The notes below the pieces were generated by a model, which searched no databases, was not told where the DNA came from, and saw only the letters and a list, made by a program, of their open reading frames with translations. The translations under genes and the position numbers were made by a program. A stretch of 64,000 nt of DNA from positions 1,860,001-1,924,000 of the forward strand of contig CATNEN010000031.1 in NCBI GenBank assembly GCA_950097015.1. The letters are read 5' to 3'. Shown here in pieces: positions 33,718 to 56,875 of this stretch. How positions within the stretch are numbered: position 1 is the first letter of the stretch; every line of letters begins with the position of its first letter. The stretch is from Macrostomum hystrix (taxonomy: Eukaryota > Animalia > Platyhelminthes).

Positions 33718-36700
33718 TTATGAGACTGAGCAGCGATTGCTCGGAGACTGAAAAGGCAAAAATCTATGTTTTAAAATAAACCTGACCTTATCTAACTCTT
33801 ATCTCAACCTAATCTCTACTCAGCTTTTTCTCAATTAGGTTTGAATTGAAGTTAATCACCAAATACTATGTTGTTTGATTGCACCGTTTAGACAATTCGG
33901 TAGCGATAATTCTTACCTGGCATTCCAATTCAACACTGAGCAGGCTGATGTTACCATTTACAACCAGCCACTTGGCCTCCTTATAGTTGTTTAGGCCAAT
34001 GCTGTAGCGAGATACAACCTTCTTGTTGATTGCGAGCTGAAATGAGATTGACGTTAAAGAAAGAGAGTCGCCAGTTTTATAAGGCTACTAGCTTTTTTGC
34101 CCGTTGTTTTTGGGGCAGAAATTTAAAGCAAAGCAGTAAGCAATTCACGTCTCTGTATTAACTTTATAGTGAAGGTCACCATTTATTTATTTACTGCATT
34201 AATGAAAAGTGAAGAGTTTGTTTAAGGGCGTTTTAAGTAAAAAATAAGTGAAAAGTTTGTCCAAACAGCCCCCTCTTGATTACTTCTTTAGAAACATGTC
34301 TATTAGCCACTCCTCTATACAGTCAGTGGCAGATCCAGGAATTTTGTTTTGGGGCGGTCTGTCAGGGGAGCGCCATGAGAATCACAGAGGGGGTGCCAGC
34401 GGCCGAAAAAGGGCGCCAGGAGCCAAGAAAGGGCGCCAGCGGCTGAAAAACGGGAGCCAGCGGCTGAAAAAGGGGCGCCAGCGGCCGAAAAGGGGCGCGA
34501 GTGTTGCGACTGGCGCCCCTGGTGGGGGCATCTTATTCCCATGATTAAAATTTAGGGGGGCGACTGCCCCCCCGCCCCCCCCCTAAATCTGCCTCTGTAT
34601 ACAGTATGCATGTACACGCGTATACATAAGGAAAATAGCCATGGCATAACAATAACAATGTCAAAGAAACAAAATTTAACTGTTTCAGAGTTCAGAGTTA
34701 GACAGGTCAAGGTCAATTCGTGACTACTTTTCTATTAATTGCTTGCGAGTCACCTCAAGGCCTGGGGATACACCACATTCTTCGTTCTTCCCCTTGGTGC
34801 GAAAATGAATAGGCCAGCTGGAGTTCCAACACGGGAGCAGGCGACATAAAGCTGCCCATGCGAGAAGCAAGGAGTCTCCAGGTTGATGCCAGCCACCTTC
34901 AGCGACTGTCCCTGAGCCTTGTTAATAGTCATCGCAAAGCACACTCTCACAGGGAACTGCAGTCGCTTGAACTGAAATGGCAGATCCGTGGGGATAATTG
35001 GAATCCGGGGAACGAACACAGACTCTCCTCTGCCAGATCCAGTCATTATCGTGGCCTCAATCACGTGTGGGAAGAGCCGCCTGACTATCAGTCTGGTGCC
35101 GTTACACAGCCTTGGCGCATTCAGGTTGCGGAGGAGCATAATTGGTGCCCCAACTTTCAGCTGCAAGTTGTGCGATGGAGTTCCAGGAGGATCTAGAGAG
35201 TTCAGAAACTCAACAGGATACTCCACAGCGGTGTCATCAGTCAACGTTGTATCAATTGACTTGTAGGTGAAAACTGCACCTGGCAACTCCTGAAGCAGTT
35301 GGTAGTTAATTTCGTTGGCGGCATCATTTCTAGGACACAGAATTGCCCTCTCTGACAGCCAGTCAACGTCAGCATATCGAACCATCAGGTTCGGGTAAAC
35401 TTTTGCCTTGAGCTCCTGCACTGACTGCACAATGTTTCCGATTGTAGCGATCGATGACTGCCCATCCTCGGTGCTAATCTCCAGCAGACCATTGCCGATT
35501 CGCAATAGATTGGCAGAGAACTCATGAGCTGTTTCGTCTCCTTGAATTGTAGCTCTCATGTTTGTTCGTAGGTGCAACTTCACAACCGATGGCCACAGGT
35601 GAGATGATTTTAGGCAAGCATTAATCTCATCAGCAGGAGTGCCACGCGGAATCACAGGCAGCGTCTGTCTAAAGTCTCCAGACAGCAGCAGAGTGACACC
35701 ACCCATCAGTTGATCGCCAGCCTCTCTCTTTCTTCTATCCCAGGCTGGCTGGAGAGAAATATAGACCGGAGAGCCCTGCGCACTGGGACGCCACCGCACT
35801 CACCGCACTCAGTCTCAGTGCTGCTTGGGGGCCAGTAGACAGTCTAGGGGTTTGGGCTGTGTACATTCACGTCTTAAAATACAATGTACAGTCTGGGGCT
35901 TCGGCGCCCGGGGAAGGGAGGGGGTGGCTGTAATAAAATTTGGCCCGCAGAGTGGCGGAGGGGAGTTGGGGTGGCTGTCCTCGGAAAACAAAAAGTGACT
36001 CACTTTGAGATGATGCAGCTTTGCTCTGGATTGAGTAGAGATGTTCAAAATTGACAGCATTGTTGGAAAACATGTAAAGTGTAAGTGGATCAAATTTGGA
36101 GAAAATATGACAAAGTGGGGCGACGATATGTCGAATTGAGTGATTTTTTGACGATTTTTGAGCAGTTTTTTGCACTTTTGAGCAGGAAGGAAATGATTTT
36201 TCGGGAATTTGAGTAGCCTATTGCACTCAGCGTAGGTGGTTTTAGGTATGTGCAAAGTTTGGTGTGATTTGGTTGAGCGGTTTCGGCGTCTATAAAGACA
36301 AAAGGTTGCACACACACACACACACACACACAGACAGACAGACAGACAGAGTTTTCACTTTTATATATATAGATGGTTTTGACCTGTCTGCCAAAAAAAC
36401 CAAAACTCAAAATTTTGCCACCAGTGGGAAAGTCGATCAGCACTCATTCAGCATTCGACAAGCACTCATTCAGCATTCGACAAGCACTCATTCAGCATTC
36501 GACAAGCACTCATTCAGCATTCGACAAGCACTCATTCAGCATTCGACAAGCACTCATTCAGCATTCGACAAGCACTCATTCAGCATTCGACAAGCACTCA
36601 TTCAGCATTCGACAAGCACTCATTTAGCATTCGACAAGCACTCATTCAGCATTCGACAAGCACTCATTCAGCATTCGACAAGCACTCATTTAGCATTCGA

Positions 36701-39700
36701 CAAGCTCTCCGTCAGCGTCGACCAGCACTCTGGCAGCGTTCTACCAGCAGTCCATCAAAATGTATGGAATTCGTTACAACTCACGGCACAGTCGCCGTTA
36801 ACGTCCAGCTGCAGGTCAATAGTTCGAACCCCGCCTTTGCTTATCAGCGGAATCGGACATAGCTCAGCCAGTCGCGTCTGCTTGACATCGTTCATCCAGG
36901 CCAGGATGGCTTGTCGGCCGTCGTCCTGGAAGCTGAGTTCGCAAATCAGCGGCTTGACACCGCTGGAATTAGGACCAACAGCCAACGAGATCGTTCTGCT
37001 GAAAAGTCAATGAGATCAACCGGTGGTGATCGTGAACTATCGGCAATTATGGTGACGTAGATACAGCCTATAAGAGCCAAAATTACAAAGTTAAATTACA
37101 CTAACTCTGAGGGCATGGAAACGTTTTTTCGACAATAAGCAGGTAATCTTTATATTTGCAATGAAGTTTTGTGTAAAACTAAATGCAATTAAAGTGTTTT
37201 GGTCCTTGAGAAGTGAACATAAAAATGGGTACTCTCGGGTGTCCAGTAAACTTTGTAAACAAGTGTACCAAGTGTAACAATGTTTAAAACTTTTAAATTC
37301 CCCAAGAAGCTCAATAAGGAAGTGGTTTTTCTTTCGTCCGAAAAACACCATTTTAGAGTTGAATAAGACTCATACCTATTAATATCTAGCAAACCATCTT
37401 GCTCCCACATTTCTAATACATTCCGTCACCGTCGAACACCCCCGCTAGCTATTGTTTTGCGCTTAGCCTGTACCTGACAAGATACGCTCGTTTCACATAG
37501 ATCTGTTTATTTCGCTTTAAATTTAACCTTGACTTAAATGACCAAAATCGCAGCTTATCAACCCATGCGTGGGCGTATAGGTAGTGTGCTAGTAAAGCAT
37601 TCTACAGCCATAATCTTCCAGTCAATACAATCTTTAAATTAAAATTTGTTGCCTTCATCTAACGAGGTTACGAGTCAGACATAAAATTAGCACATGGCCA
37701 GCCCAGTGGGCTATTGTTGATAAATATAGATTCGCAGGGTGGCTAGTGCACTCACGAGCCAGATCTGCTGTCGCTGGTATAAATTTCAGTTTCCGACACC
37801 AGAGTGAGCCGGATCAGCCTATTGGGGTGGGCCTGGTCGATGGCTGGCAGCCGGTTGCAGTACGGCAGCCACAGGCTGGTCGGGAAGCTGGCGGCGAGGA
37901 AGACGGCGCCAGAGCCTGCCAGGTGTAGATGTGTCGCTAGGTCCGGGTCAGCCTGGTGGCGCATGCTGGCACAATGTCCTGTGTCTAATGTCACGTAATA
38001 GTCCTCGAGGCGTCGAACAATTATCGACTCAAACGCGCGCCCGAGAATTTCTTTTGAAGCGTCTTTGCCGCAGTGTGTGCGCCCGGACTCCGAAGGTGGC
38101 GGTTCCGCCGATTCCTCTTCGCTCTGCAGCCCACCAGTGATGGTGCTCAAAGCCATGCCGCCGATGCAGCTGCGGGCTTCGCGGTCTGGAGTAACTCTGA
38201 CTAGCAATGGGACATCCGCGTTGGCTTGGTCGTTGCCAGACCTCAGCGAGATGCGGCACTCGCTGACAGCTGTCGCAGATGTCGGTGAGGGCAGCAGCCG
38301 TGACCAGACCTTGATCTGGCTACCAACTGGCAGCTGCCTTGGCAAGGCGATCGTTGAGCTGGCTCGCTGGTGGGTTGAGAGACGTTATAGCAATGAGCAA
38401 CACCATATTTATAGTAGATAGTTTAATCTGTACATAGTAGATCTGGACTCAAGCAAAACCTCACCATTTCTTTGATTTCTAAACCTTCCAGCATTAGATC
38501 GCCTTCGATGTACATGCTCATGATTTTTTGTGAGTCGAGCTTCATGGTGTATGTCATCAGGTACTCGCCGTTTATGTGAATCTGAATTTTTTACGCGGAA
38601 TAAAAGTGTACAAGCCACCTAATATTGCAGTTCTCAATTCCTAATAAATAAATAATAGAGCACCGAGACTTTTTAAAGTATGCACTCGCAGTTCTAGGAA
38701 GTGTACTTTCTAGGGGAGTGAGGAGCAGAGCGGTCAACGCGTTTTGCTCTTGCACCAAGGTCCTTGAGCCTGATTCCGCGGCGAGGCCAATTTCATGTGG
38801 GGCGCAGCCTCGGAGAGAAAGCTTGGGGGCTTGTTGTGCAATTTACGCCATTGAGGGCCAACCTCTAGGGCACAGTGAAAGTGTTTTACTGTCACTGCCT
38901 GACGATGAAAAAGTCAGGACAGATGTACACACCTGTGTTAGCCTGCGAACGGTTGCATTAATACGTGTACTCCTAGGAGTCAGCGAAATGGGCGGAATTG
39001 CCTCTTCACTGGCTGCGGGTCTAGGATCACCAAATGATGTGCCATTGCCCGCAGCCCTCATGCAGTTATTATTATTATTGTGTACTTTCTAAGACGTGTA
39101 AACGACAGCTGTGGCGCAGTGTTCGTGCTAATTATCTGCTAAGCGAACAAATTGCTGGTTCCACATGATAGCCTCGTGTACTACCCTCACCTGGACCAAT
39201 TGTCCGTGTAGTGTCAGCAGGACGCTGCGCAAAGCTGCCAACTGGGGCACTTCGCGCTGCTCTACCTCACGGATGAAGCCACCGCCGCCGCCACTGCGAA
39301 GCTCCGGATCGGCGCGGCCCACAGAGGCCATGAGGCTGGAGATGCTAAGCGCGCAGATCATAGCCTCGCCATCGGCCAGGCCCAGCAACAGGCCGGTGGA
39401 GCTGCTCTCTGGCTGCACGCGAAGCTGTACGGACTCAACAAGGCTGAGCGGACAGGCCAGTTGTTCGCGCAGTGGCAGTTCCAAGCGCTCGTGAAATTCC
39501 ACGCTCGTGTACTCACATTCCGGGTGAAGAATGACGTGTGTGAAAGAGGACACGGCTACATGATGAGGAACAATGCACTCAGTGTCCATCAAGATTGCCT
39601 AAAAACAAATGGATTAAATTAATTCCAAATAGTTTTTCTTCATTAACTGAAGAGAACTAAACCTGACACGCTGCATGCATATCTTAATCTTAATTCTGTA

Positions 39701-42700
39701 CCGCATTCTTGTGTACAGCTGGCATTACTAGTAGCTGTGACTCTGGGGTACCCCTTTGTATTTCCTAGCCAAAGCTGGAACCTATAGTCTCCTATACGAG
39801 CGCGCATGCTTCGGTGCAACGGAAAGCATAGAGGGAAAGCCGAGTGCTAATTGCTGCACAAATAAACAAATAAACAAATAAACAAATAAACAAATAAACA
39901 AAAAAACAAATAAACAAACAAACAAAAAAACAAATACAGAAATAAACAAATAAACAAATAAACAAATAAACAAATAACAAGGGAGATTAATATTCTCCTC
40001 AATTTCGATGCCTAAATTATACTCTCGTATAAAAAATGTAAAGCGAATAAATTTATTTTATCTCTTACACATAGTCCCGATCGCCTAAACCGAATCTCAA
40101 GTCGAAATGCATCAATCAGACGCGGTGGCAGAAGCACCTTGGCTTCGCTGACGCAGTGGCCGCAGATCAGCTGGCTGGTCTGCAGTAGCGACGGCTTATC
40201 AGTACCGCCAGGCGCTGAAACTTGCAGCTCGAACGCTTGCGCTCCAGGCGAATAGTCAAGATTCTCGAGTGACAGTTTCAGTCTGATTTCGAATTGTTTA
40301 CGAATTCATATTATGCAAATCAATGATCACTGTGAACAAATGTGCTTATCGACTCACCTAGCCGTCGCGTTAGTCATGACTCCGCAGATCACAATGCTGT
40401 GCCCGTATCGAATTCGCACCGGTAGTCGCGCCGTGAACGGCGTCAACTAAAATCGAGAAAATTTTATTACCCACGTATCCTGATTCTGTTATAGAACAAA
40501 ATATTCGTATCAACAAATGCAAATGGGCAGCCGAGTAAAGGCTACAAAAATAATTTGAAGCAATCTATTTAAAAGGCTTTATCTTGGAATCCTACCGGCT
40601 TCAATGTTGAAAATTCTCTTTCAGTAGCTGGCCTATCGACAGTAGCAGCAATGGGTTCGTTGAGCGGCTTGAGCTTTGATACATCACTGCCGCACAGGCT
40701 GCCTTCGCTGCGATTCTGTTGCTCACTTTTGACCTGGCTGTTGTCGTCTGCCCCGATCCCTCTGCTTTGCCGACTATCTCCTCGCGGCCTTTTGGGCCTG
40801 ACTCTGCGACGGCCTGCTTTGGATCGTGTCGGTGTGGGCGCTGAAAACTTTTTGGCCAGTCTGTCCTTGAATGAATCGCTACTGCAGCAACTGCTGCTCC
40901 CGTCGTCACTGAGGGAGCTGTCGCTATCTCTGCTCGCTGCTCGGCCACCTTTGACGAAGCCGCTGGAGCCTTGGAGGTTGTAGGAAGTGTAGCGAAACAT
41001 GCCGAGACTAGCCGCACTCTCAGCCTGGGCTGGAGCCAGCTTAGTGCCTTGTATGTCAGCTGGCCCTGACATGGTGGAACCAGTCAGTCTGCTAGCAACA
41101 GCGTCTCGGCCGTGAATTTTCTCCATGGCTGCCCTCAGCTCGGCCTGCGGTTTCGCTAACCCTCTTTTATTCTTCAGCTTAGCTGCGGTATCCAGATATT
41201 CAGCAGGCAAGCCGAGGATTCTTGCATCAGTGTGTTGATTGTTAGCCACCTGGGATATAAAGAATAGTGTGGAAATGCGCTTTGACGATTCGCCTATTGA
41301 ATAACCTGTTACTTAGTTAGTAGTATATAAGAAAACAAACCACTCGTTTAGAAGATGCAACGAGTAAATTTTCATCCTCTAATAAGAAAACAAGGCTTGA
41401 GACATTTTTAAAGATTTACGAAGCAAGATTGCTTCTTTGCAGGGGGATGTACTTTAATCTAAATGGCTGTTGCAGAGGTCAGGAAGGGACTAAGCAACAC
41501 GCAATGAACAAACTGCTTTAAAAGAACGCTGTGTATACGTAGAAGTATTACGTCGATTAAATACTACCGTAGTAAGCACCCACTCGACTTTCTTTATTCA
41601 ATGCGGTCGTTTCATAAATGTAAGGGTAAATATATAGAAATATTTTCTTCCTGTAAAATTACCTACAAAGGTGGATTCACTTTAAGACTCCGCCCACACA
41701 CAGAAACAATATACAAGCAGATGTCTGCTGACCAATAACTTTTCAAATTCTGCGCATCAATCCGTTTATCACGCCTCACGTCTGTCAACAGCGGAAATGT
41801 GAATTAAATAGTCACTATGGCAAAGAAGCTCACAAAGTCATCCGCCAGGAGCTGCTGTCCGTCCTCATCGTCTTCTTGGCTTTCATCCTCGCTAGCTGAC
41901 AGGCGACCCGGCTGCTGGTCCACTTCATCCAAGCGGCTCTGCTCAATCGTGTCGAGAATTTTCTCCGAAAACTTCAGCTTTTTGCTTGGAAGCGCTGAAA
42001 AAGCAATCTGATGCACAGTCGGCATCGACTCGCTGGGCTCGCTTGAGACAATCTCTTGCATCTTTTGCGGAAAATCGCTAGCGACAAGAGCATTTCTTTC
42101 GGATTCAGAAGATGCAACGAGAAAATGTTGATCCTCTTCAAATAAATACTCTGGTCCTCGCAGCGCATTTGAACCCGACTCCAAATCAGCGAACTCGATC
42201 GATTTCAGCAGTACTGCAGGCTCTTCTGAATTTCCGCAGCTCTCTCGCCTCTCGATATTTTCGCCACGATCATAACCTTTCGTTTTGTCTTCTGGATCTC
42301 GATGTTCAATACAGCGTGAGGCTTTACTTAACGGTGTATTATCGTTAGCGACTTCACAATTTGCGCTGTGCCTGCTCCTGGCGTCTTCGACATTGAGCAA
42401 CTCATCTGTCCCCTTCGACAGAGGATTACCCGATGAAGCTGCATACACAGACAAGTTTTCATTTTGTAGCGTCTTAGCGATATGCTCAAAGGAACTTAAT
42501 TGGTCTCCTGGTTCGAACGATTCTTTCAGTGCTTTTGAAGGAGCTGCCACATCAGCAGCATATCTTGAATTAATGTGTTCTTCAATAATTAGTTTTGAAT
42601 CATCTTCACTCCGAAGATCGGCACCAATATGAGTCGAGAAATCCATTTGATTAGCTCTAGCAGAGAGCCCTAAGCTCTCTGAGCAGTTTTGTAAGTGGCT

Positions 42701-45700
42701 GATCGATTGATCATGCTGCTCCTTAGCTTCTTCCTTTCGAATGGGTATGACCACAGCGCAAAAACTTATATTTTCAGAAGGCAATGGCTCGGAATAGTCT
42801 TGTTGCATGCTGTTGGTGAGGCATTGATCCATATCAACTAAGGTATTATCATTTGAAGGCTGTCTTTCGAGAATTTCATCCAAATCAACATCACATATTT
42901 CGAGACCTAGGCTAGTGCTTTCTTCCAACAAATTTCTGCGATTTGATAGTTCAAAGTTATCTTCGACTAAACGCAAGAGTTCATTAGGATGCTCAATATG
43001 GTCAGTTGACAACGACCGCTTAAAAATATCATCCAGGTCACTTTCAGAAGAACTGCAAACGATCGACCTAGGATGCACACCTACATACTTCGGATAGCCA
43101 AATTTATCTTTCGACGTTTCGTCAACGTCAATATTCAGTACGTCCGGTTGTGAATCTGCCAAGAGAAGTTCGACCGACAAACTCTCCAGTAGAAAAGTAC
43201 TAAGTTCGGCATCAAAATCAATACTTTGAATAAATTCCTTAGTAGCATCCTCACGAACAACACGAACATCTCGCATCAACGCAGCCGAGCGGTGCGAATT
43301 AGAAATAACGCTAGCATTATGACATTTCAAGGAATCTTTACCTCCAGATGGCTCCGTTTCCAGCGAGACACCGTCTACCAAAACTTGATTTGAGTACTTC
43401 CTTTTATAACTTCCATCACGTCCTGCTTCTTCAACGCCATCAAAGTCAGTAAAATCGCAACTACCTCCATGCCGCTTAAAAACACCAAGAAACCGACCAA
43501 AGGCGCTCTTTATTGGCTTCGAATTCACTGAAATTGACACCTCCTCAGGACAAGCAGACCCAGTTTCATGTAAGTTATTCGACTTCTTATAATCAGAAAA
43601 CACCTCGACTCTCTGGACTTCGTAATCATCGTCAGATCGTTGCATTTGTCGAGCGAGCTGATCCTCGTCAGTCTGCAGTGCGTCCTTTGCCTTGTTCAAA
43701 GCATCAGATGACATGCTCTCGTCATGTCGCTGCTCGATCGGAGGTTCCGCTAGCTCCAATGATAGCAGCTGATCTTCGAACTCGATCTTGACATCGTCAG
43801 GCTCTTGCTCGAGTCGCCTCACCAACTCGGCAAGGTCAGCGTTCTCGACTGCCAATGTCTCGTCTTTCTTGACATCGTCATCATCGTCAGATCGTTGCAG
43901 TTGTCGAGCGAGCTGATCCTCGCCAGTCTGCACTGCGTCCTTTGCCTTGCTCAAAGCATCAGATATGCTTTCGTCATGTCGCTGCTCGATCGGAGGTTCC
44001 GCTAGCTCCAATGATAGCAGCTGATCTTCGAACTCGATCTTGACATCGTCAGGCTCTTGCTCGAGTCGCCTCACCAACTCGACAATGGCAGCGTTCTCGA
44101 CTGCCAATGTCTCGTCTTTCTCGACATCGTCATAATCGTCAGATCGTTGCAGTTGTCGAGCGAGCTGAGCCTCGCCAGTCTGCAGGTCGTGCTTTGCCTT
44201 GTTCAAAGCATCAGATGACATGCTCTCGTCATGTCGCTGCTCGATCGGAGGTTCCGCTAGCTCCAATGATAGCAGCTGATCTTCGAACTCGATCTTGACA
44301 TCGTCAGGCTCTTGCTCGAGTCGCCTCACCAACTCGACAATGGCAGCGTTCTCGACTGCCAATGTCTCGTCTTTCTCGACATCGTCGTCATCGTCAGATC
44401 GTTGCAGTTGTCGAGCGAGCTGAGCCTCGTCAGTCTGCAGGTCGTGCTTTGCCTTGTTCAAAGCATCAGATGAGATGCTCTCGTCATGTCGCTGCTCGAT
44501 CGGAGGTTCCGCTAGCTCCAATGATAGCAGCTGATCTTCGAACTCGATCTTGACATCGTCAGGCTCTTGCTCGAGTCGCCTCACCAACTCGACAATGGCA
44601 GCGTTCTCGACTGCCAAGGTCTCGCCTATTTTAGTCTGATCTGAATTTTTGAGCTTCTTCTGTGCTCGTGGAACTGACTCGCTGTTCGTCACTGTTTCTG
44701 TATACTCGTCAATTCGCCTACTCGAGTGACTTGCGTCTTGATCCTTGTGTAGATGAGGATTCACCATCTCTAGCGAAATTTTCTCATCATGAAGCGTGTC
44801 AGTTTCTAAATTTCGCAAATCGTCGGCCTGTCTATGAAGTTGCTTCCATTGTGTAGAGTGCTCATCGCGTTTGTCTTCGCCTAATTCCAGCGCACTGGAA
44901 CCATCTTCCGATGCAGTTCTGCCCCTGTCTTGCTCTCTCCATTGTGCCACTTGGCTTGATTGCTTCCTGCGAAAGCTTCCTTCTTTTTCGGCATTATCGT
45001 AGGTTTCAAAGTCTGAAACGTTATATGACCCCCTATGTCGTTTGAATACGCCCAAGAGCTTTCCGAACACGTTCCTTTTGTGCCTCGGCGAATTAGAGGA
45101 CTCGCGCGGCATCGTTGCCAAAGAATCAGAACTCAGACTCTTGTCGGCAATTGTAGCACTCACACTAATACTGTGTGGTCTTATTACTGGTTTTGCAGTC
45201 CTTGACAAATCCTCACCAGACGTGTGTCGCATCTTCACTCTCGTTTCAAGGGGCTGAAATTCTGCACTTCCGAGGGACAGCCGCTTTACTATCCGACTGG
45301 GCTTTCTTTGCTCAAGTTCAACAGACATACTCTCGTTTACATTGCTAACGAGAAGTTCAGAAGAAGACTCGCTTTGAACAAGGACTTCTTTATGCTCAAT
45401 AGCGCGCTCATATTCGAGCGATGTCTGCGCAGCAGCTGCTTCTAAAGAGCAGCTCACATCTTGAACGAGTTGAATTAGCTTTTCTTCAAGCTCCACTGAT
45501 AGCTGTTGATCTTCGAACTCGATCTTGACATCGTCAGGCTCTTGCTCGAGTCGCCTCACCAACTCGACAATGTCAGCGTTCTCGACTGCCAATGTCTCGC
45601 CTTTCTCGACATCGTCATCATCGTCAGATCGTTGCAGTTGTCGAGCGAGCTGATCCTCGTCAGTCTGCAGGTCGTGCTTTGCCTTGTTCAAAGCATCAGA

Positions 45701-48700
45701 TGACATGCTCTCGTCATGTCGCTGCTCGATCGGAGGTTCCGCTAGCTCCACTGATAGCAGCTGATCTTCGAACTCGATCTTGACATCGTCAGGCTCTTGC
45801 TCGAGTCGCCTCACCAACTCGACAATGGCAGCGTTCTCGACTGCCAATGTCTCGTCTTTCTCGACATCGTCGTCATCGTCAGATCGTTGCAGTTGTCGAG
45901 CGAGCTGATCCTCGTCAGTCTGCAGTGCGTCCTTTGCCTTGTTCAAAGCATCAGATGACATGCTCTCGTCATGTCGCTGCTCGATCGGAGGTTCCGCTAG
46001 CTCCACTGATAGCAGCTGATCTTCGAACTCGATCTTGACATCGTCAGGCTCTTGCTCGAGTCGCCTCACCAACTCGACAATGGCAGCGTTCTCGACTGCC
46101 AATGTCTCGTCTTTCTCGACATCGTCATCATCGTCAGATCGTTGCAGTTGTCGAGCGAGCTGATCCTCGTCAGTCTGCAGTGCGTCCTTTGCCTTGTTCA
46201 AAGCATCAGATGAGATGCTCTCGTCATGTCGCTGCTCGATCGGAGGTTCCGCTAGCTCCACTGATAGCAGCTGATCTTCGAACTCGATCTTGACATCGTC
46301 AGGCTCTTGCTCGAGTCGCCTCACCAACTCGACAATGGCAGCGTTCTCGACTGCCAAGGTCTCGCCTATTTTAGTCTGATCTGAATTTTTGAGCTTCTTC
46401 TGTGCTCGTGGAACTGACTCGCTGTTCGTCACTGTTTCTGTATACTCGTCAATTCGCCTACTCGAGTGACTTGCGTCTTGATCCTTGTGTAGATGAGGAT
46501 TCACCATCTCTAGCGAAATTTTCTCATCATGAAGCGTGTCAGTTTCTAAATTTCGCAAATCGTCGGCCTGTCTATGAAGTTGCTTCCATTGTGTAGAGTG
46601 CTCATCGCGTTTGTCTTCGCCTAATTCCAGCGCACTGGAACCATCTTCCGATGCAGTTCTGCCCCTGTCTTGCTCTCTCCATTGTGCCACTTGGCTTGAT
46701 TGCTTCCTGCGAAAGCTTCCTTCTTTTTCGGCATTATCGTAGGTTTCAAAGTCTGAAACGTTATATGACCCCCTATGTCGTTTGAATACGCCCAAGAGCT
46801 TTCCGAACACGTTCCTTTTGTGCCTCGGCGAATTAGAGGACTCGCGCGGCATCGTTGCCAAAGAATCAGAACTCAGACTCTTGTCGGCAATTGTAGCACT
46901 CACACTAATACTGTGTGGTCTTATTACTGGTTTTGCAGTCCTTGACAAATCCTCACCAGACGTGTGTCGCATCTTCACTCTCGTTTCAAGGGGCTGAAAT
47001 TCTGCACTTCCGAGGGACAGCCGCTTTACTATCCGACTGGGCTTTCTTTGCTCAAGTTCAACAGACATACTCTCGTTTACATTGCTAACGAGAAGTTCAG
47101 AAGAAGACTCGCTTTGAACAAGGACTTCTTTATGCTCAATAGCGCGCTCATATTCGAGCGATGTCTGCGCAGCAGCTGCTTCTAAAGAGCAGCTCACATC
47201 TTGAACGAGTTGAATTAGCTTTTCTTCAAGCTCCACTGATAGCTGTTGATCTTCGAACTCGATCTTGACATCGTCAGGCTCTTGCTCGAGTCGCCTCACC
47301 AACTCGACAATGTCAGCGTTCTCGACTGCCAATGTCTCGCCTTTCTCGACATCGTCATCATCGTCAGATCGTTGCAGTTGTCGAGCGAGCTGATCCTCGT
47401 CAGTCTGCAGGTCGTGCTTTGCCTTGTTCAAAGCATCAGATGACATGCTCTCGTCATGTCGCTGCTCGATCGGAGGTTCCGCTAGCTCCACTGATAGCAG
47501 CTGATCTTCGAACTCGATCTTGACATCGTCAGGCTCTTGCTCGAGTCGCCTCACCAACTCGACAATGGCAGCGTTCTCGACTGCCAATGTCTCGTCTTTC
47601 TCGACATCGTCGTCATCGTCAGATCGTTGCAGTTGTCGAGCGAGCTGATCCTCGTCAGTCTGCAGTGCGTCCTTTGCCTTGTTCAAAGCATCAGATGACA
47701 TGCTCTCGTCATGTCGCTGCTCGATCGGAGGTTCCGCTAGCTCCACTGATAGCAGCTGATCTTCGAACTCGATCTTGACATCGTCAGGCTCTTGCTCGAG
47801 TCGCCTCACCAACTCGACAATGGCAGCGTTCTCGACTGCCAATGTCTCGTCTTTCTCGACATCGTCATCATCGTCAGATCGTTGCAGTTGTCGAGCGAGC
47901 TGATCCTCGTCAGTCTGCAGTGCGTCCTTTGCCTTGTTCAAAGCATCAGATGAGATGCTCTCGTCATGTCGCTGCTCGATCGGAGGTTCCGCTAGCTCCA
48001 CTGATAGCAGCTGATCTTCGAACTCGATCTTGACATCGTCAGGCTCTTGCTCGAGTCGCCTCACCAACTCGACAATGGCAGCGTTCTCGACTGCCAATGT
48101 CTCGTCTTTCTCGACATCGTCGTCATCGTCAGATCGTTGCAGTTGTCGAGCGAGCTGAGCCTCGTCAGTCTGCAGGTCGTGCTTTGCCTTGTTCAAAGCA
48201 TCAGATGAGATGCCCTCGTCATGTCGCTGCTCGATCGGAGGTTCCGCTAGCTCCACTGATAGCAGCTGATCTTCGAACTCGATCTTGACATCGTCAGGCT
48301 CTTGCTCGAGTCGCCTCACCAACTCGACAATGTCAGCGTTCTCGACTGCCAATGTCTCGCCTTTCTCGACATCGTCATCATCGTCAGATCGTTGCAGTTG
48401 TCGAGCGAGCTGATCCTCGTCAGTCTGCAGGTCGTGCTTTGCCTTGTTCAAAGCATCAGATGACATGCTCTCGTCATGTCGCTGCTCGATCGGAGGTTCC
48501 GCTAGCTCCACTGATAGCAGCTGATCTTCGAACTCGATCTTGACATCGTCAGGCTCTTGCTCGAGTCGCCTCACCAACTCGACAATGGCAGCGTTCTCGA
48601 CTGCCAATGTCTCGTCTTTCTCGACATCGTCGTCATCGTCAGATCGTTGCAGTTGTCGAGCGAGCTGATCCTCGTCAGTCTGCAGTGCGTCCTCTGCCTT

Positions 48701-51700
48701 GTTCAAAGCATCAGATGACATGCTCTCGTCATGTCGCTGCTCGATCGGAGGTTCCGCTAGCTCCACTGATAGCAGCTGATCTTCGAACTCGATCTTGACA
48801 TCGTCAGGCTCTTGCTCGAGTCGCCTCACCAACTCGACAATGGCAGCGTTCTCGACTGCCAATGTCTCGTCTTTCTCGACATCGTCGTCATCGTCAGATC
48901 GTTGCAGTTGTCGAGCGAGCTGAGCCTCGTCAGTCTGCAGGTCGTGCTTTGCCTTGTTCAAAGCATCAGATGAGATGCCCTCGTCATGTCGCTGCTCGAT
49001 CGGAGGTTCCGCTAGCTCCACTGATAGCAGCTGATCTTCGAACTCGATCTTGACATCGTCAGGCTCTTGCTCGAGTCGCCTCACCAACTCGACAATGTCA
49101 GCGTTCTCGACTGCCAATGTCTCGCCTTTCTCGACATCGTCATCATCGTCAGATCGTTGCAGTTGTCGAGCGAGCTGATCCTCGTCAGTCTGCAGGTCGT
49201 GCTTTGCCTTGTTCAAAGCATCAGATGACATGCTCTCGTCATGTCGCTGCTCGATCGGAGGTTCCGCTAGCTCCACTGATAGCAGCTGATCTTCGAACTC
49301 GATCTTGACATCGTCAGGCTCTTGCTCGAGTCGCCTCACCAACTCGACAATGGCAGCGTTCTCGACTGCCAATGTCTCGTCTTTCTCGACATCGTCGTCA
49401 TCGTCAGATCGTTGCAGTTGTCGAGCGAGCTGAGCCTCGTCAGTCTGCAGGTCGTGCTTTGCCTTGTTCAAAGCATCAGATGAGATGCTCTCGTCATGTC
49501 GCTGCTCGATCGGAGGTTCCGCTAGCTCCACTGATAGCAGCTGATCTTCGAACTCGATCTTGACATCGTCAGGCTCTTGCTCGAGTCGCCTCACCAACTC
49601 GACAATGGCAGCGTTCTCGACTGCCAATGTCTCGTCTTTCTCGACATCGTCGTCATCGTCAGATCGTTGCAGTTGTCGAGCGAGCTGAGCCTCGTCAGTC
49701 TGCAGGTCGTGCTTTGCCTTGTTCAAAGCATCAGATGAGATGCTCTCGTCATGTCGCTGCTCGATCGGAGGTTCCGCTAGCTCCACTGATAGCAGCTGAT
49801 CTTCGAACTCGATCTTGACATCGTCAGGCTCTTGCTCGAGTCGCCTCACCAACTCGACAATGGCAGCGTTCTCGACTGCCAATGTCTCGTCTTTCTCGAC
49901 ATCGTCGTCATCGTCAGATCGTTGCAGTTGTCGAGCGAGCTGAGCCTCGTCAGTCTGCAGGTCGTGCTTTGCCTTGTTCAAAGCATCAGATGAGATGCTC
50001 TCGTCATGTCGCTGCTCGATCGGAGGTTCCGCTAGCTCCACTGATAGCAGCTGATCTTCGAACTCGATCTTGACATCGTCAGGCTCTTGCTCGAGTCGCC
50101 TCACCAACTCGACAATGGCAGCGTTCTCGACTGCCAATGTCTCGTCTTTCTCGACATCGTCATCATCGTCAGATCGTTGCAGTTGTCGAGCGAGCTGATC
50201 CTCGTCAGTCTGCAGTGCGTCCTTTGCCTTGTTCAAAGCATCAGATGAGATGCTCTCGTCATGTCGCTGCTCGATCGGAGGTTCCGCTAGCTCCACTGAT
50301 AGCAGCTGATCTTCGAACTCGATCTTGACATCGTCAGGCTCTTGCTCGAGTCGCCTCACCAACTCGACAATGGCAGCGTTCTCGACTGCCAAGGTCTCGC
50401 CTATTTTAGTCTGATCTGAATTTTTGAGCTTCTTCTGTGCTCGTGGAACTGACTCGCTGTTCGTCACTGTTTCTGTATACTCGTCAATTCGCCTACTCGA
50501 GTGACTTGCGTCTTGATCCTTGTGTAGATGAGGATTCACCATCTCTAGCGAAATTTTCTCATCATGAAGCGTGTCAGTTTCTAAATTTCGCATATCGTCG
50601 GCCTGTCTATGAAGTTGCTTCCATTGTGTAGAGTGCTCATCGCGTTTGTCTTCGCCTAATTCCAGCGCACTGGAACCATCTTCCGATGCAGTTCTGCCCC
50701 TGTCTTGCTCTCTCCATTGTGCCACTTGGCTTGATTGCTTCCTGCGAAAGCTTCCTTCTTTTTCGGCATTATCGTAGGTTTCAAAGTCTGAAACGTTATA
50801 TGACCCCCTATGTCGTTTGAATACGCCCAAGAGCTTTCCGAACACGTTCCTTTTGTGCCTCGGCGAATTAGAAGACTCGCGCGGCATCGTTGCCAAAGAA
50901 TCAGAACTCAGACTCTTGTCGGCAATTGTAGCACTCACACTAATACTGTGTGGTCTTATTACTGGTTTTGCAGTCCTTGACAAATCCTCACCAGACGTGT
51001 GTCGCATCTTCACTCTCGTTTCAAGGGGCTGAAATTCTGCACTTCCGAGGGACAGCCGCTTTACTATCCGACTGGGCTTTCTTTGCTCAAGTTCAACAGA
51101 CATACTCTCGTTTACATTGCTAACGAGAAGTTCAGAAGAAGACTCGCTTTGAACAAGGACTTCTTTATGCTCAATAGCGCGCTCATATTCGAGCGATGTC
51201 TGCGCAGCAGCTGCTTCTAAAGAGCAGCTCACATCTTGAACGAGTTGAATTAGCTTTTCTTCAAGCTCCACTGATAGCTGTTGATCTTCGAACTCGATCT
51301 TGACATCGTCAGGCTCTTGCTCGAGTCGCCTCACCAACTCGACAATGTCAGCGTTCTCGACTGCCAATGTCTCGCCTTTCTCGACATCGTCATCATCGTC
51401 AGATCGTTGCAGTTGTCGAGCGAGCTGATCCTCGTCAGTCTGCAGGTCGTGCTTTGCCTTGTTCAAAGCATCAGATGACATGCTCTCGTCATGTCGCTGC
51501 TCGATCGGAGGTTCCGCTAGCTCCACTGATAGCAGCTGATCTTCGAACTCGATCTTGACATCGTCAGGCTCTTGCTCGAGTCGCCTCACCAACTCGACAA
51601 TGGCAGCGTTCTCGACTGCCAATGTCTCGTCTTTCTCGACATCGTCGTCATCGTCAGATCGTTGCAGTTGTCGAGCGAGCTGATCCTCGTCAGTCTGCAG

Positions 51701-54700
51701 TGCGTCCTTTGCCTTGTTCAAAGCATCAGATGACATGCTCTCGTCATGTCGCTGCTCGATCGGAGGTTCCGCTAGCTCCACTGATAGCAGCTGATCTTCG
51801 AACTCGATCTTGACATCGTCAGGCTCTTGCTCGAGTCGCCTCACCAACTCGACAATGGCAGCGTTCTCGACTGCCAATGTCTCGTCTTTCTCGACATCGT
51901 CGTCATCGTCAGATCGTTGCAGTTGTCGAGCGAGCTGATCCTCGTCAGTCTGCAGTGCGTCCTTTGCCTTGTTCAAAGCATCAGATGACATGCTCTCGTC
52001 ATGTCGCTGCTCGATCGGAGGTTCCGCTAGCTCCACTGATAGCAGCTGATCTTCGAACTCGATCTTGACATCGTCAGGCTCTTGCTCGAGTCGCCTCACC
52101 AACTCGACAATGGCAGCGTTCTCGACTGCCAATGTCTCGTCTTTCTCGACATCGTCGTCATCGTCAGATCGTTGCAGTTGTCGAGCGAGCTGAGCCTCGT
52201 CAGTCTGCAGGTCGTGCTTTGCCTTGTTCAAAGCATCAGATGAGATGCTCTCGTCATGTCGCTGCTCGATCGGAGGTTCCGCTAGCTCCACTGATAGCAG
52301 CTGATCTTCGAACTCGATCTTGACATCGTCAGGCTCTTGCTCGAGTCGCCTCACCAACTCGACAATGTCAGCGTTCTCGACTGCCAATGTCTCGCCTTTC
52401 TCGACATCGTCGTCATCGTCAGATCGTTGCAGTTGTCGAGCGAGCTGATCCTCGTCAGTCTGCAGTGCGTCCTTTGCCTTGTTCAAAGCATCAGATGACA
52501 TGCTCTCGTCATGTCGCTGCTCGATCGGAGGTTCCGCTAGCTCCAATGATAGCAGCTGATCTTCGAACTCGATCTTGACATCGTCAGGCTCTTGCTCGAG
52601 TCGCCTCACCAACTCGACAATGGCAGCGTTCTCGACTGCCAATGTCTCGTCTTTCTCGACATCGTCATAATCGTCAGATCGTTGCAGTTGTCGAGCGAGC
52701 TGAGCCTCGTCAGTCTGCAGGTCGTGCTTTGCCTTGTTCAAAGCATCAGATGAGATGCTCTCGTCATGTCGCTGCTCGATCGGAGGTTCCGCTAGCTCCA
52801 ATGATAGCAGCTGATCTTCGAACTCGATCTTGACATCGTCAGGCTCTTGCTCGAGTCGCCTCACCAACTCGACAATGGCAGCGTTCTCGACTGCCAATGT
52901 CTCGTCTTTCTCGACATCGTCGTCATCGTCAGATCGTTGCAGTTGTCGAGCGAGCTGATCCTCGTCAGTCTGCAGTGCGTCCTTTGCCTTGTTCAAAGCA
53001 TCAGATGACATGCTCTCGTCATGTCGCTGCTCGATCGGAGGTTCCGCTAGCTCCACTGATAGCAGCTGATCTTCGAACTCGATCTTGACATCGTCAGGCT
53101 CTTGCTCGAGTCGCCTCACCAACTCGACAATGGCAGCGTTCTCGACTGCCAATGTCTCGTCTTTCTCGACATCGTCGTCATCGTCAGATCGTTGCAGTTG
53201 TCGAGCGAGCTGATCCTCGTCAGTCTGCAGTGCGTCCTTTGCCTTGTTCAAAGCATCAGATGACATGCTCTCGTCATGTCGCTGCTCGATCGGAGGTTCC
53301 GCTAGCTCCACTGATAGCAGCTGATCTTCGAACTCGATCTTGACATCGTCAGGCTCTTGCTCGAGTCGCCTCACCAACTCGACAATGGCAGCGTTCTCGA
53401 CTGCCAATGTGTCGGCTTTCTCGACATCGTCGTCATCGTCAGATCGTTGCAGTTGTCGAGCGAGCTGATCCTCGTCAGTCTGCAGTGCGTGCTTTGCCTT
53501 GTTCAAAGCATCAGATGAGATGCTCTCGTCATGTCGCTGCTCGATCGGAGGTTCCGCTAGCTCCACTGATAGCAGCTGATCTTCGAACTCGATCTTGACA
53601 TCGTCAGGCTCTTGCTCGAGTCGCCTCACCAACTCGACAATGGCAGCGTTCTCGACTGTCAATGTGTCGGCTTTCTCGACATCGTCGTCATCGTCAGATC
53701 GTTGCAGTTGTCGAGCGAGCTGATCCTCGTCAGTCTGCAGTGCCTGCTTTGCCTTGTTCAAAGCATCAGATGACATGCTCTCGTCATGTCGCTGCTCGAT
53801 CGGAGGTTCCGCTAGCTCCACTGATAGCAGCTGATCTTCGAACTCGATCTTGACATCGTCAGGCTCTTGCTCGAGTCGCCTCACCAACTCGACAATGTCA
53901 GCGTTCTCGACTGCCAATGTCTCGTCTTTCTCGACATCGTCGTCATCGTCAGATCGTTGCAGTTGTCGAGCGAGCTGAGCCTCGCCAGTCGGCAGTGCGT
54001 CCTTTGCCTTGTTCAAAGCATCAGATGACATGCTCTCGTCATGTCGCTGCTCGATCGGAGGTTCCGCTTGCTCCAATGATAGCAGCTGATCTTCGAACTC
54101 GATCTTGACATCGTCAGGCTCTTGCTCGAGTCGCCTCACCAACTCGACAATGGCAGCGTTCTCGACTGCCAATGTCTCGTCTTTCTCGACATCGTCGTCA
54201 TCGTCAGATCGTTGCAGTTGTCGAGCGAGCTGATCCTCGTCAGTCTGCACTGCGATTTTTTGTGCTTTTACATTCTCCTCGTCATGGGTTGTCTCGTTCG
54301 GAAATTGTTCCTTGTAAACATTTCGTGAAGCAGTCTTTTTAGAGTATTTTTGTTGTGGTAAATTATTTCCATACTGTCTGTTTTTAATTATTCTTTTCTC
54401 ATGCTTTTGATCTAGTTCGTAGGAACCGTGATGTTTCTTTGTTGCGGCTTTTAGCATTTTCAAGAACAAAATGGACCTCTTTAGCGATGCTGGACTGCCT
54501 ACATGCGTTGGTGTTGTTGGGCCTGACTCTCCTATTTCATTGTGTTCATTGTATTGTTTAGCTGCTCTTTCGAATTCCTTCAACTGGTCTGAGCTTGGAA
54601 GTGAATCTATCATTATTGTGAGGCTCTCGTAATTGAAGTCATTGTGATGGTTGGCCTGGAGAGTCGTTTTTACTGTGGCATCTTCTTCTGGAGGCCTGTC

Positions 54701-56875
54701 CCGGACTTCTTTGTTTTCATGATTTGTAGAGATGTCGGCTGCTGTTGGCTCTTTAGTGATCTGTTGCTTTGTACCAGCTTCATCTAGCTCTACCCACGCG
54801 GTCTCCACCAGGTCACTAGAATATTTTGTTTGATCTCCTTCCATCAGGTGCATTGAATGTGAGTGATTGCCTGTTTTGGTTCCTGTATTGGCATCGTGCA
54901 GGTCTGCTTTTCCTGGCCATTCCTGAGCGATGGCATCCTTGCGTCCATAGATACTGCTGCTGCCGTTCTTAGCGGATCCTAGCTGTATGTCAACTTCTAC
55001 CATGCTTATGACAGGCGATTCATCTTTGCGTCTGTATGTTGTAGATACTTTCCGCTGTACTGTCCCAGTGGAGTCCACGGGCTCAAAATCCACAACGCTA
55101 TTGAACTGTACAGTGCCTGGCCTGATGTACGCTGTGTCCGAATTTCGAAGTTGAGTGCGCTGCAGTGCTTTCTGTGAACTTGAGGTTTGGAATTTCTCCG
55201 GTTCTGATTGGCCCGTGCAACTCTGTCCAGTGTTTGGGTGTTTGTCAGCTTTGCTGCTCATGGGAATTGGCGGTCGGCCTAAGTTCTCGATTCTGGGCAG
55301 TGAGAGCCGTAGCTGCTTTATGTAGCTTGGCATGCTCTGTAGTCGGTCGTCTAAAATATTTAAAAAGACTTTGCTGTAAGGGCTCCTGGAAGTAGATCTG
55401 CTCTTTTTGTGTGACTTATAATTACAACTGATACAGTTTTAAACTTAAAATTATTGAACTGATTTTGAGTTGCTTGATTTATGGAAGACACTCCTCGCAC
55501 TTGTGTTTGCATTGCGCGATTCATCATTTGCGCTGAATTTAAAACAATAGGAAACGCTCACCTGGACGGCCTATCAGCTTCTGGTCGTCACTGGAGCCAG
55601 CCTGGCAGACTGGAATCGACTCACCCGAGTCACAAAATTCCAGCTCGATGAACTCAGCTTCGCCGTCCAGCATCACCTGGCAGATTGCGAGAAAATTGCC
55701 ACCGTGGGGCAGCTGCGCCAGGCTGCTGTCCTGTAGGCGAATCTGAATTTGTTTTCAAATCAACCAGAATTACCTATCGCCGTGCGAGGCAGGTGCGTGG
55801 ACTCTGCGTATGCGACTTGAAAGGTTAAGAACTCACATCGTAGCACTTTGGTTGCACTGCGACTCTGACGACAAATGAATACGGCGTTACGATGACATCA
55901 CCGCATTTGCCTCTACGGTTCGTCTGCTTGCCATTGCTGCGGTAGCTGATTTCGAATAGGCCTTCACTAGTCAGGCAGACATCTAGGAACTCGAGTTGCC
56001 AGTCCTCGGCTGCCAGGGTGACATTCAGCCTAGAGAGGCGTAGAATAGAGTTTGGTGTAGAATATAGAATATTTTTGTCTAATATAATAATAATAATGGT
56101 AATAATAATAATAATAATTGCAGCAGGGCCGTGGGCAATGCCACATCATTTGGTGACACTAGACCCTCAGCCATCGAGGAGGCAATTCTGCCCATTCCGA
56201 GCACACATGAGCTCACAGACACCGTACGCAGGCCACACTTAAACAGGTGTGTGCATCTGCCCTGACTTTCTCATCGTCAGGCAGTGTACACTCTCACTGT
56301 GCCTTGGAAGTTGGCCCTCAAAGGGCGTATATTGCACAACAGGCACCAAAGCCTTCTCTCCGCGGCTGCGTTACAAATGAATATGGCCTCACTGCGGAAT
56401 CGAGCTCAGGGGCATTGGTACGAGAGGTAAACGCGTTAACCGCTCTGCCACCGAGCCCCTAAATGCCTTATATATGAACTTATGTGTTTCATCTGGGGTA
56501 TTAAAAAAATAGTATTTTATATTTTATCTGCATATACTTTGCAGATGAAACGGCCGACTAAACTCTAAATCGCGTCTTTAGAAACAAAATTCAATGCCAC
56601 TCGTCATCATCTGACTCACGACTTTCCGTGCAGTACGCCCTTGGCTACAACAACGTCTCCAGTGATCAGGCTTGCTGACATATTGTGCACTAGCAAACTC
56701 TCCTGGATTGAGAAGAGGATTAAAAAGCATTCGTCATTGCCTGATATAAGAGATCACATCTCATGCACATCAGGTAAACTTTGATTTAACTTACTCCGCG
56801 AGGACACCGGCCCGCTTCAGCTGAGCTCGGCTCATTGCTTAGCCCGGCAGTCTTGGGCCCACGAAATTTCAACAT
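33718..56875 (-). CDS. Giant multi-galectin-fold protein with acidic tandem-repeat spacer, about 5,480 aa (14-exon model)
   Basis: Exons: 56875-56795, 56702-56620, 56029-55837, 55742-55625 (alternative donor at 55562), 55350-41834, 41249-40596, 40446-40358, 40282-40069, 39598-39191, 38581-38465, 38366-37756, 36998-36785, 34036-33917, 33747-33718. All junctions are GT-AG and phase-consistent (16,449 nt). Galectin-like strand patterns include PFTARLPVRIRYGHSIVICG, IHINGEYLMTY..IMSMYIEGDLMLEGL and LPRQLPVGSQIKV..FESIIVRRLEDYYVTLDTGHCASMRHQ. The first and last exons are least certain. Confidence 0.75.
34324..34597. mobile_element. hAT-type MITE nested in the Helitron, 8-bp TSD
   Basis: TIRs CAGTGGCAGATCCAGG / reverse complement CAGAGGCAGATTTAGG. 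Flanks TATACAGT at 34316-34323 and 34598-34605. Internal ~21-bp GGGCGCCAGCGGCTGAAAAA repeats. Confidence 0.9.
34750..35748 (-). pseudogene. Helitron RepHel PIF1 helicase, C-terminal half (5'-truncated, frame intact)
   Basis: Motifs [57 protein letters not shown]...LCNGTRL, FKRLQFPVRVCFAMTINKAQGQSL and FSHGQLYVACSRV. The Rep domain and helicase motif I are absent. Confidence 0.92.
36440..36703. repeat. 22-bp minisatellite (GCACTCATTCAGCATTCGACAA), 12 copies
   Basis: Direct inspection; intronic, between the Helitron 5' end and exon 36785-36998. Confidence 0.97.
38713..39079 (+). mobile_element. tRNA-derived SINE family B with (ATT)n tail and 12-bp TSD
   Basis: Flanked by GTGTACTTTCTA at 38701-38712 and 39080-39091. 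tRNA-like head AGCAGAGCGG...GAGCCTGATTCC. Homologous to 56081-56460. Confidence 0.85.
39860..39978. repeat. (AAATAAAC)n simple repeat, intronic
   Basis: Direct inspection. Confidence 0.9.
43621..54250 (-). repeat. Coding tandem array: about 31 x 255-bp (85-aa) units plus three 861-bp (287-aa) blocks
   Basis: The 255-bp period is visible throughout. Interspersed blocks lie at 50402-51262, 46367-47227 and 44627-45487, with a 1740-bp higher-order duplication. The frame stays open through the array and both unique flanks. Confidence 0.97.
56081..56460 (-). mobile_element. SINE family B, copy 2
   Basis: The reverse strand reads AGGGGCTCGGTGGCAGAGCGGTTAACGCG...GAGCTCGATTCC...CCAAATGATGTGGCATTGCCC..(ATT)n and aligns with 38713-39079. 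Confidence 0.82.

Follow-up and report, generated by a model that had tools for sequence, protein, structure and literature searches.

Evidence for a Macrostomum hystrix gene in which predicted galectin-like domains frame a giant acidic repeat region

On the minus strand of a 64,000-nucleotide (nt) stretch of the genome of the flatworm Macrostomum hystrix (GenBank assembly GCA_950097015.1, contig CATNEN010000031.1, positions 1,860,001 to 1,924,000; hereafter the window, in whose own numbering all positions are given), an uninterrupted open reading frame (ORF) of 4,509 amino acids (aa) extends over 41804-55333. A 13.5-kb open frame is unsurprising in itself, because it is built from an open 255-bp unit, and the question raised by the locus is whether this frame belongs to a gene and what such a gene would encode. 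The locus was counted as a gene on the grounds of RNA evidence and of a conserved orthologue in Macrostomum lignano. The initial annotation, made from the letters of the window, had placed the ORF within one larger gene with galectin-like ends, and this view was borne out by the RNA at its 5′ side and by the colinearity of the orthologue; this supports a single gene whose product has one galectin-like domain, then a giant region of acidic repeats, then four further galectin-like domains (D1 to D4).

The ORF was found to be the fifth of 13 coding exons, which when joined give one frame of 5,510 aa running from an ATG at 56875 to a stop codon at 33866-33868 on the minus strand (Table 1). All 12 introns are of the GT..AG type, with a GT donor at every boundary and pyrimidine-rich AG acceptors. 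The ATG, which coincides with the upper limit first proposed for the gene, is in frame, and the start that it opens (MLKFRGP) resembles that of the M. lignano orthologue (MMKFREP). The chain had been described as 14 phase-consistent exons encoding ~5,480 aa; the consistent joining held, and the counts are corrected here to 13 coding exons and 5,510 aa. Within the giant exon 5, a unique N-terminal part is followed by the acidic repeats with their spacers and then by a unique C-terminal part.

Table 1. Features of the giant gene in the window, with the evidence for each (CRD, carbohydrate-recognition domain; rmsd, root-mean-square deviation; joints are written as the two flanking positions)
Feature	Position	Strand	Evidence
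5′ untranslated part of exon 1	56876..56967	-	RNA contig starts ~56958-56967; pieces 56794-56958/56967 in runs X2, X3 and X4
Coding exon 1, aa 1-27, ATG 56875	56795..56875	-	RNA joint 56794/56701; in-frame ATG
Coding exon 2, aa 28-54, N-terminal galectin-like domain begins	56620..56702	-	RNA pieces and joints; tblastn with PAA89897.1
Coding exon 3, aa 55-119, N-terminal galectin-like domain	55837..56029	-	RNA joints 56619/56028 and 55837/55742; 65% identity to PAA89897.1 residues 50-121
Coding exon 4, aa 120-179, end of N-terminal domain	55562..55742	-	Joint 55562/55350 (211 nt skipped, GT..AG) in four runs
Coding exon 5, giant, 13,517 nt, aa 180-4685	41834..55350	-	ORF; acceptor 55350; RNA cover unbroken to 54300; donor GTGAGC 41834
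Repeat region, 255-bp units (within exon 5)	43604..54254	-	Tandem Repeats Finder; unit and spacer spacing in the protein; spacer translation
Coding exon 6, aa 4686-4903, unique Ser-rich, FRYxSYNLQG and RLAKKF motifs	40596..41249	-	tblastn with PAA89897.1 4956-5130; splice sites; motifs in both species; no direct RNA junction
Coding exon 7, start of galectin-like D1	40358..40446	-	tblastn with PAA89897.1; GT..AG
Coding exon 8, remainder of D1	40069..40282	-	69% identity to PAA89897.1; D1 profile against nematode and human galectin CRDs, E 5e-10
Coding exon 9, most of D2	39191..39598	-	71% identity to PAA89897.1; D2 model on galectin-3 CRD, Z 17.6, rmsd 1.9 Å
Coding exon 10, last D2 strands	38465..38581	-	Exon itself matches Pfam Gal-bind_lectin, E 0.004; 72% identity to PAA89897.1
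Coding exon 11, D3 and start of D4	37756..38366	-	55% identity to PAA89897.1; D3 profile, galectin-16, E 4e-8; model on galectin-7/galectin-8N, Z ~17
Coding exon 12, middle of D4	36785..36998	-	65% identity to PAA89897.1; tandem galectins over model residues 292-595
Coding exon 13, end of D4 and stop codon	33866..34036	-	tblastn with PAA89897.1 5677-5717; ORF closure

Direct evidence for the 5′ side was obtained from cDNA-like contigs of four public runs, all of one 2020 study, which were aligned with positions 54300-58299. Each run yielded one contig of ~1.7 kb with 0-2 mismatches to the window, composed of the pieces 56794-56958/67, 56619-56701, 55837-56028, 55562-55742 and 54300-55350. The joints 56794/56701, 56619/56028, 55837/55742 and 55562/55350 were present in every run, the skipped stretches being GT..AG on the minus strand, and exons 1-5 were spliced together in the contigs of all four runs. 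The contigs derive from spliced RNA, and at its 5′ side the giant exon does not stand alone as a gene. They end ~40 nt past 54300, at the start of the repeats, as is expected of short-read assembly. The phase-1 acceptor first proposed at 55350 is the one used in all four runs. The donor proposed to precede it, at 55625, gave way to 55562, which the contigs use, both being in frame; this choice adds 21 in-frame residues, and the orthologue also carries extra residues here (positions 160-190). Position 55625 itself is an in-frame alternative GTGAGT donor on the minus strand, 63 nt upstream of the used donor, and may be a minor alternative 5′ splice site removing 21 residues.

A search with the unique C-terminal part of the ORF found a single protein, the M. 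lignano BOX15_Mlig005900g1 (PAA89897.1, UniProt A0A267GX50, 5,725 aa), which is uncharacterised and bears only the automatic name 'Galectin domain-containing'. Querying the protein database with 383 aa from the unique N-terminal part of the giant exon gave no match, probably owing to the length filter. The ends of PAA89897.1, aligned to the window by tblastn, were colinear with the exons proposed to either side of the giant ORF. This protein is colinear with every exon of the window gene and shares the N-terminal domain, the acidic repeats with the same unit and spacer motifs, the Ser-rich region and the four C-terminal domains; it differs in the length of the repeat unit (77 aa against 85 aa) and in the number of spacer modules (10 against 3), and the unique regions of the two proteins are only 25-49% identical. 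The M. lignano paralogues have shorter, non-acidic linkers lacking the repeat motifs. One of them, P0011, combines an N-domain, a ~950-aa linker and four domains in a single model, and its gene (NIVC01004292.1, 779-17176) consists of small exons for the N-domain, a single linker exon of 2.1 kb and small exons for the galectin domains; it has a long last intron, as does the window gene, and no acidic repeats. The name 'Protein SCAR' attached to the sequence P0020 had no Pfam support and was treated as spurious. Literature searches on Macrostomum galectins and on Mlig005900 returned nothing relevant, and no paper on this architecture was found. The earlier statement that no family with this architecture was known holds for the literature searched, with the qualification that the architecture is already present in databases as the uncharacterised PAA89897.1.

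The fold of the C-terminal domains was predicted on residues 5120-5725 of the orthologue, which are 48-72% identical to the corresponding exons of the window, and the alignment supplied to AlphaFold2 (AF2) combined the orthologue with three paralogues and with the exons of the window itself. The resulting model was all-beta, with a mean predicted local distance difference test score (pLDDT) of 72.6 and a predicted template modelling score (pTM) of 0.62. When it was compared with the PDB by Foldseek, tandem galectins were retrieved at E 1e-13 and single CRDs at template modelling (TM) scores of ~0.8. VIA-align, with Z of 17-18, placed D2 (model residues 151-292) on the galectin-3 CRD (Z 17.6, 1.9 Å), D3 (292-446) on galectin-7 and galectin-8N (~2.2 Å, Z ~17), and D1 and D2 together on galectin-8, the rmsd for D2 and D3 ranging from 1.9 to 2.4 Å over ~130 residues. 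Tandem galectins among the Swiss-Prot models covered model residues 150-445, 292-595 and 10-443, and proteins with four CRDs among the AlphaFold DB clusters spanned residues 13-595 at E 1e-25. The predicted structure thus shows the four C-terminal domains to have the galectin fold, in agreement with the four tandem galectin-like folds of the initial annotation.

Sequence comparisons pointed in the same direction. The same segment of the orthologue matched Pfam Gal-bind_lectin (PF00337) with 38.4 bits against a cut-off of 22.1; the single exons of the window gave one galectin match only, of 17 bits (E 0.004), under the cut-off. Profiles run against PDB sequences gave E-values of 5e-10 for D1 and 4e-8 for D3, the nearest sequences to D3 being galectin-16, -13 and -10, and weak values of 0.003-0.016 for D2 and D4. 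Profiles were needed here, as phmmer of window exon 11 against PDB sequences found no match. Among 1.84 billion representative proteins, the C-terminal segment of the orthologue had six matches, namely three from M. lignano, two fish multi-galectin proteins and one galectin-domain protein of a limpet; close relatives of this module were confined to Macrostomum.

For the N-terminal domain, taken as ~aa 35-160 of the window protein, the evidence was mixed. Pfam gave no match. A profile run against the whole PDB matched no entries other than galectin-3 and one adenovirus galectin domain; the E-values were 0.014 or weaker, and the matches were limited to the C-terminal half. With hhalign, the domain aligned with D1 over 123 columns (E 3.5e-4, probability 37%). 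In the ESM Atlas it scored 0.96, sharing 206 of 256 features with Gal-bind_lectin clusters, and 80 of its 100 nearest entries were of that family. On the galectin-like nature of this domain, as originally claimed, profile, hhalign and language model agree with one another, but the profile E-values are marginal and the predicted structure is poor; a fifth galectin-like domain is likely but not established.

As for the sugar site, alignment of D3 with galectin-8N indicated that the canonical His was replaced by Leu, Asn by Arg, Arg by Glu, Asn by Ser and Trp by Gln, with only Glu retained. Neither H-x-N-x-R (searched as H.N.R) nor W-x-x-E-x-R (searched as W..E.[RK]) was found in any of the five domains of either species. 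In an alignment read by eye, the Trp position of D1 is occupied by Cys in the window and by Pro in the orthologue, and D1 of the M. lignano paralogues keeps W-x-x-E-x-R. The domains therefore appear, from their sequences, to have lost the usual sugar-binding residues. Since the classical definition of a galectin requires both conserved motifs and β-galactoside binding, they are described here as galectin-like folds and not as demonstrated lectins. No signal peptide or membrane segment was detected in the 5,510-aa product, the highest Kyte-Doolittle mean over 19 residues being 1.48; the N-terminus is not hydrophobic, just as had been noted at the outset, and the product is predicted to be made in the cytoplasm.

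The acidic region was resolved by Tandem Repeats Finder into four blocks (43604-44624, 45489-46364, 47229-50399 and 51264-54254) of 255-bp tandem units that are 95-98% identical, interleaved with three 864-bp spacer units (44625-45488, 46365-47228 and 50400-51263). At the protein level these correspond to ~37 units of 85 aa, 33 of which carry the anchor RRLEQEPDDVKIEFEDQ, and to three basic, serine-rich spacers of 288 aa, together with an incomplete fourth occurrence of the spacer motif. The product of the giant exon has a net charge of -621 and an isoelectric point of 4.35. The units of the two species are orthologous and ~40% identical, with differing copy numbers, and have in common the motif LAR(Q/K)LQ and the block LVxxLxQxxDxVxIExEDQxxSxELxEPPI. 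Best conserved between the species is the spacer core, with ~75% identity over 120 aa as estimated from the alignment; it reads KRLSLGSAEF ... RHTSGE ... RPHS(I/V)SV ... NVFGK(L/F)LGVFKRHRGSYNVSD ... SFRRKQSSQ and is rich in R-x-x-S sites. In the ESM Atlas, the repeat and spacer units had no credible relatives (scores 0.66 and 0.82, low recognition), and Pfam matches obtained with three identical repeats (YmgB and others) were rejected as summing artefacts of repetition. An AF2 model of residues 20-720 of the orthologue had a mean pLDDT of 40.7, with the linker and repeats mostly below 50 except for two short helices per unit. A flexible, mostly disordered polyanion with short helices fits this prediction better than the acidic 'rod' that had first been envisaged.

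The nearest known systems are galectins of several kinds. CvGal1 and CvGal2, galectins of oysters, likewise have four tandem galectin beta-sandwiches and no signal peptide (PMC7053492), and AlphaFold DB models with four CRDs, the best of which has 555 aa, align with the C-terminal block end to end. The oyster proteins retain most sugar-contact residues and bind glycans (PMC7053492), whereas the window protein lacks the sugar motifs and has an extra fifth domain and 4,500 acidic residues. Pairs of domains are matched best, both in structure and by profile, by tandem-repeat galectins (galectin-8, -9 and -4; nematode LEC-1 and Tl-gal); these differ in having two CRDs within ~280-360 aa in the matched entries, and were crystallised with lactose or other sugars according to the entry titles. 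Galectin-16, -13 and -10, which we take to be non-classical family members, share the galectin fold, as do GRIFIN and HSPC159, and all five differ in being single-domain proteins of ~140 aa. Several of them have an altered or lost β-galactoside site. Very large proteins with galectin domains are also predicted in fish, namely the Myxocyprinus 'lgals4' isoforms (P0005; 1,981 aa, 12 matched galectin stretches), eel LOC118208806 (P0006; 3,214 aa, 5 matched stretches) and zebrafish si:dkey-151j17.4 (A0A0R4II06; 2,601 aa), although these are distant, with 26-29% identity over single domains. Giant multi-galectin proteins exist, as gene models, outside flatworms, and the earlier generalisation that galectins have at most about four CRDs leaves these fish predictions out of account.

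Taken as a whole, this architecture suggests a working model. Galectin-fold modules blind to sugar, at both ends of the chain, would serve as binding heads for protein or other non-canonical ligands, and would be linked through a connecting region that is long, flexible, polyanionic and for the most part disordered. That region would present dozens of conserved short motifs, namely the LAxxLQ helix, the LVxxLxQxxDxVxIExEDQ block and the R-x-x-S sites of the spacer modules. The whole could then act inside the cell as a giant multivalent tether or scaffold, and gains and losses of repeats would shift its reach and valency; the basic, serine-rich modules might open it to regulation by kinases. 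We lean, with modest confidence, towards this reading: one expressed gene of 13 exons whose cytoplasmic product of 5,510 aa acts as a giant multivalent tether or scaffold.

Several points weigh against it. The function as a tether was deduced from the architecture alone. The C-terminal structure was modelled on the orthologue and not on the window's own spliced protein, the alignment behind the predicted disorder of the repeats was shallow, and for the N-terminal domain the poor model of orthologue residues 20-720 gave partial strands with pLDDT of 56-81 over ~40 residues. Direct RNA evidence covers 54300-58299, upstream of the junction 41834/41249; short-read contigs cannot span the repeats, so that a single full-length messenger RNA (mRNA) is beyond their reach. 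The copy number of the repeats could also be affected by assembly.

Another use of the repeats, which we regard as improbable, is that of a polyvalent ubiquitin-binding array with one helix per acidic unit resembling the motif interacting with ubiquitin (MIU; D-x-L-A-x-x-L-Q with acidic residues). Ubiquitinated cargo would then be gathered where the galectin-fold heads bind, as in a fused galectin and autophagy-receptor system. The window protein has 30 copies of LAxxLQ and the orthologue 22, most units of either species carrying the motif, and LAR(Q/K)LQ is conserved among units that are otherwise 40% identical. In RNF168 MIUs a conserved Ala is reported to be critical (PMC2699339), and the canonical MIU is described as having a highly conserved Leu-Gln (PMC5824887); the repeat motif carries both that Ala and the Leu-Gln. 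One of the short helices in the AF2 model of the orthologue falls on the LAxxLQ segment, and an ORF resembling an RBR ligase, with IBR domains, lies ~4.6 kb beyond the 3′ end of the gene, which may be coincidence. Set against this, the match covers only six residues, phmmer of a 34-aa segment against PDB sequences found nothing, neither Pfam nor the ESM Atlas returned a ubiquitin-binding family, and conservation within the unit is highest not here but in the block LVxxLxQxxDxVxIExEDQ. A bolder formulation, to which we attach equally little weight, is a cytoplasmic giant combining sugar-blind galectin heads with at least 30 MIU-like helices and phospho-regulated basic islands, or else a new, macrostomid-specific class of polyanionic tether tuned by its repeats. 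The first of these, if true, would combine in one chain functions that in vertebrates are split between galectins and ubiquitin-binding autophagy receptors.

The galectin fold might instead speak for a lectin, or for a component of mucus or adhesive, that is secreted non-classically and acts outside the cell. Galectins lack a signal peptide and leave cells by unconventional routes, oyster galectins with four CRDs act at cell surfaces (PMC7053492), and the C-terminal block is colinear with four-CRD galectin models. The canonical sugar-binding residues, however, are absent from all five domains, D3 has the presumably non-classical galectins as its nearest PDB sequences, and the conserved basic spacers rich in R-x-x-S look like targets of cytoplasmic kinases. 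We know of no precedent for the unconventional export of a polyanion of ~600 kDa. Secretion is considered doubtful, since the sugar site is lost and the protein so large.

It is still less likely that two separate genes are involved, one whose giant exon runs to a stop of its own at 41804 and another that begins independently and comprises exons 6-13. Such a split would accord with the unobserved 41834/41249 junction, with a stop only 10 codons past the donor at 41834 and with an internal Met in exon 6, upstream of the first well-conserved stretch. On the other hand, the phase-0 GTGAGC donor at 41834, which the initial annotation had fitted to the downstream chain, is indeed present and strong, and joins in frame, with matching phase, to a pyrimidine-rich acceptor at 41249. 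The equivalent point is crossed by two M. lignano models, PAA89897.1 and an independent one of 1,166 aa (P0002), and the model of paralogue P0011 unites N-domain, linker and four domains. The runs of the 2020 study contain 0.60-0.64 of the sampled words of 40500-42500, and the share of 31-mers lying wholly in exons 5 and 6 is 0.64; in the upstream region, where exon-only content is confirmed by the contigs, 0.38-0.40 of the words were observed against 0.41 expected from exon-only 31-mers. The share of words fits exon-only content without a 3′ untranslated region past 41834, a test of weak power, and its outcome would be the same for exons 5 and 6 spliced together or both expressed separately, which also counts against the single-gene reading. 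From these observations we infer splicing of exon 5 to exon 6 at 41834/41249.

A further alternative, which we likewise hold to be very unlikely, takes the repeats for a recent, largely neutral expansion or an inflation of the assembly, tolerated as filler between functional end domains. The near-identity of the units (95-98%), the differing copy number and unit length between species and the existence of paralogues without acidic repeats would suit it. The variable sites within the array likewise have no clear third-position excess (33, 34 and 42 by codon position), with 32 synonymous and 94 non-synonymous variants over 55 and 200 sites; the absence of a codon-position bias says little, because it is expected for very young copies. 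Yet thousands of codons remain open in both species, the same unit and spacer motifs are conserved in both, the estimated identity of the spacer core being ~75% over 120 aa, and the unique N-terminal part of the exon is transcribed and spliced. A role as an adhesive-release factor, suggested by the adhesive and releasing glands of M. lignano, was rejected as unlikely, since a factor secreted from granules should have a signal peptide.

Several other features lie in the introns and flanks of the gene. A dispersed repeat of ~330 bp occurs in intron 2 (56130-56470) and, in the opposite orientation, in intron 9 (38725-39050), the two copies being 78% identical. Its summed word depth in the RNA contigs is as high as 3,500-7,600, and many partial contigs contain it, which suggests a very abundant element resembling a short interspersed nuclear element (SINE) or a miniature inverted-repeat transposable element (MITE), transcribed in many contexts; scans for Rfam families and tRNAs over 33000-58500 and over intron 2 found nothing. 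The 2.7-kb last intron contains, at 34753-35799 on the minus strand, a 349-aa open segment with Pif1 helicase and Pif1 2B domains (E 3e-19), which probably represents an inserted piece of a Helitron. A 22-bp minisatellite of 13 copies occupies 36439-36730 in intron 12, and a (ACAAATAA)15 microsatellite 39858-39977 in intron 8. On the plus strand, the neighbouring ORF with IBR domains (27481-29274, 597 aa, E 4e-15), on the strand opposite to the giant gene, is probably an RBR-type ubiquitin-ligase gene, and a 467-aa ORF at 7286-8689 has an HMG box (E 1e-5). At 12766-13717 and 20553-21596 both strands are open for at least 300 aa, with Pfam returning low-complexity noise only; these stretches are probably repeat arrays, matching a strong AT skew at 14-22 kb.

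As a rule, proteins of the galectin fold are small and comprise one to four domains. In the gene described here, five galectin-fold domains, of which the N-terminal one is likely, frame 4,500 residues of polyanionic repeats, and the gene is transcribed and is conserved between two Macrostomum species, with fast change in the number of repeats and the length of the unit. Should the protein be no more than lineage-specific filler, the value of the finding would lie mainly in a corrected annotation. M. lignano is amenable to RNA interference and in situ hybridisation, and the orthologue Mlig005900.g1 makes the question testable. If, as in the favoured reading of a giant intracellular tether or scaffold, the terminal domains serve as binding heads and docking motifs lie in the repeats, the gene would offer a natural example of a protein that has its reach and valency tuned through the turnover of its repeats, and the galectin fold would here have a new use that does without the sugar site.

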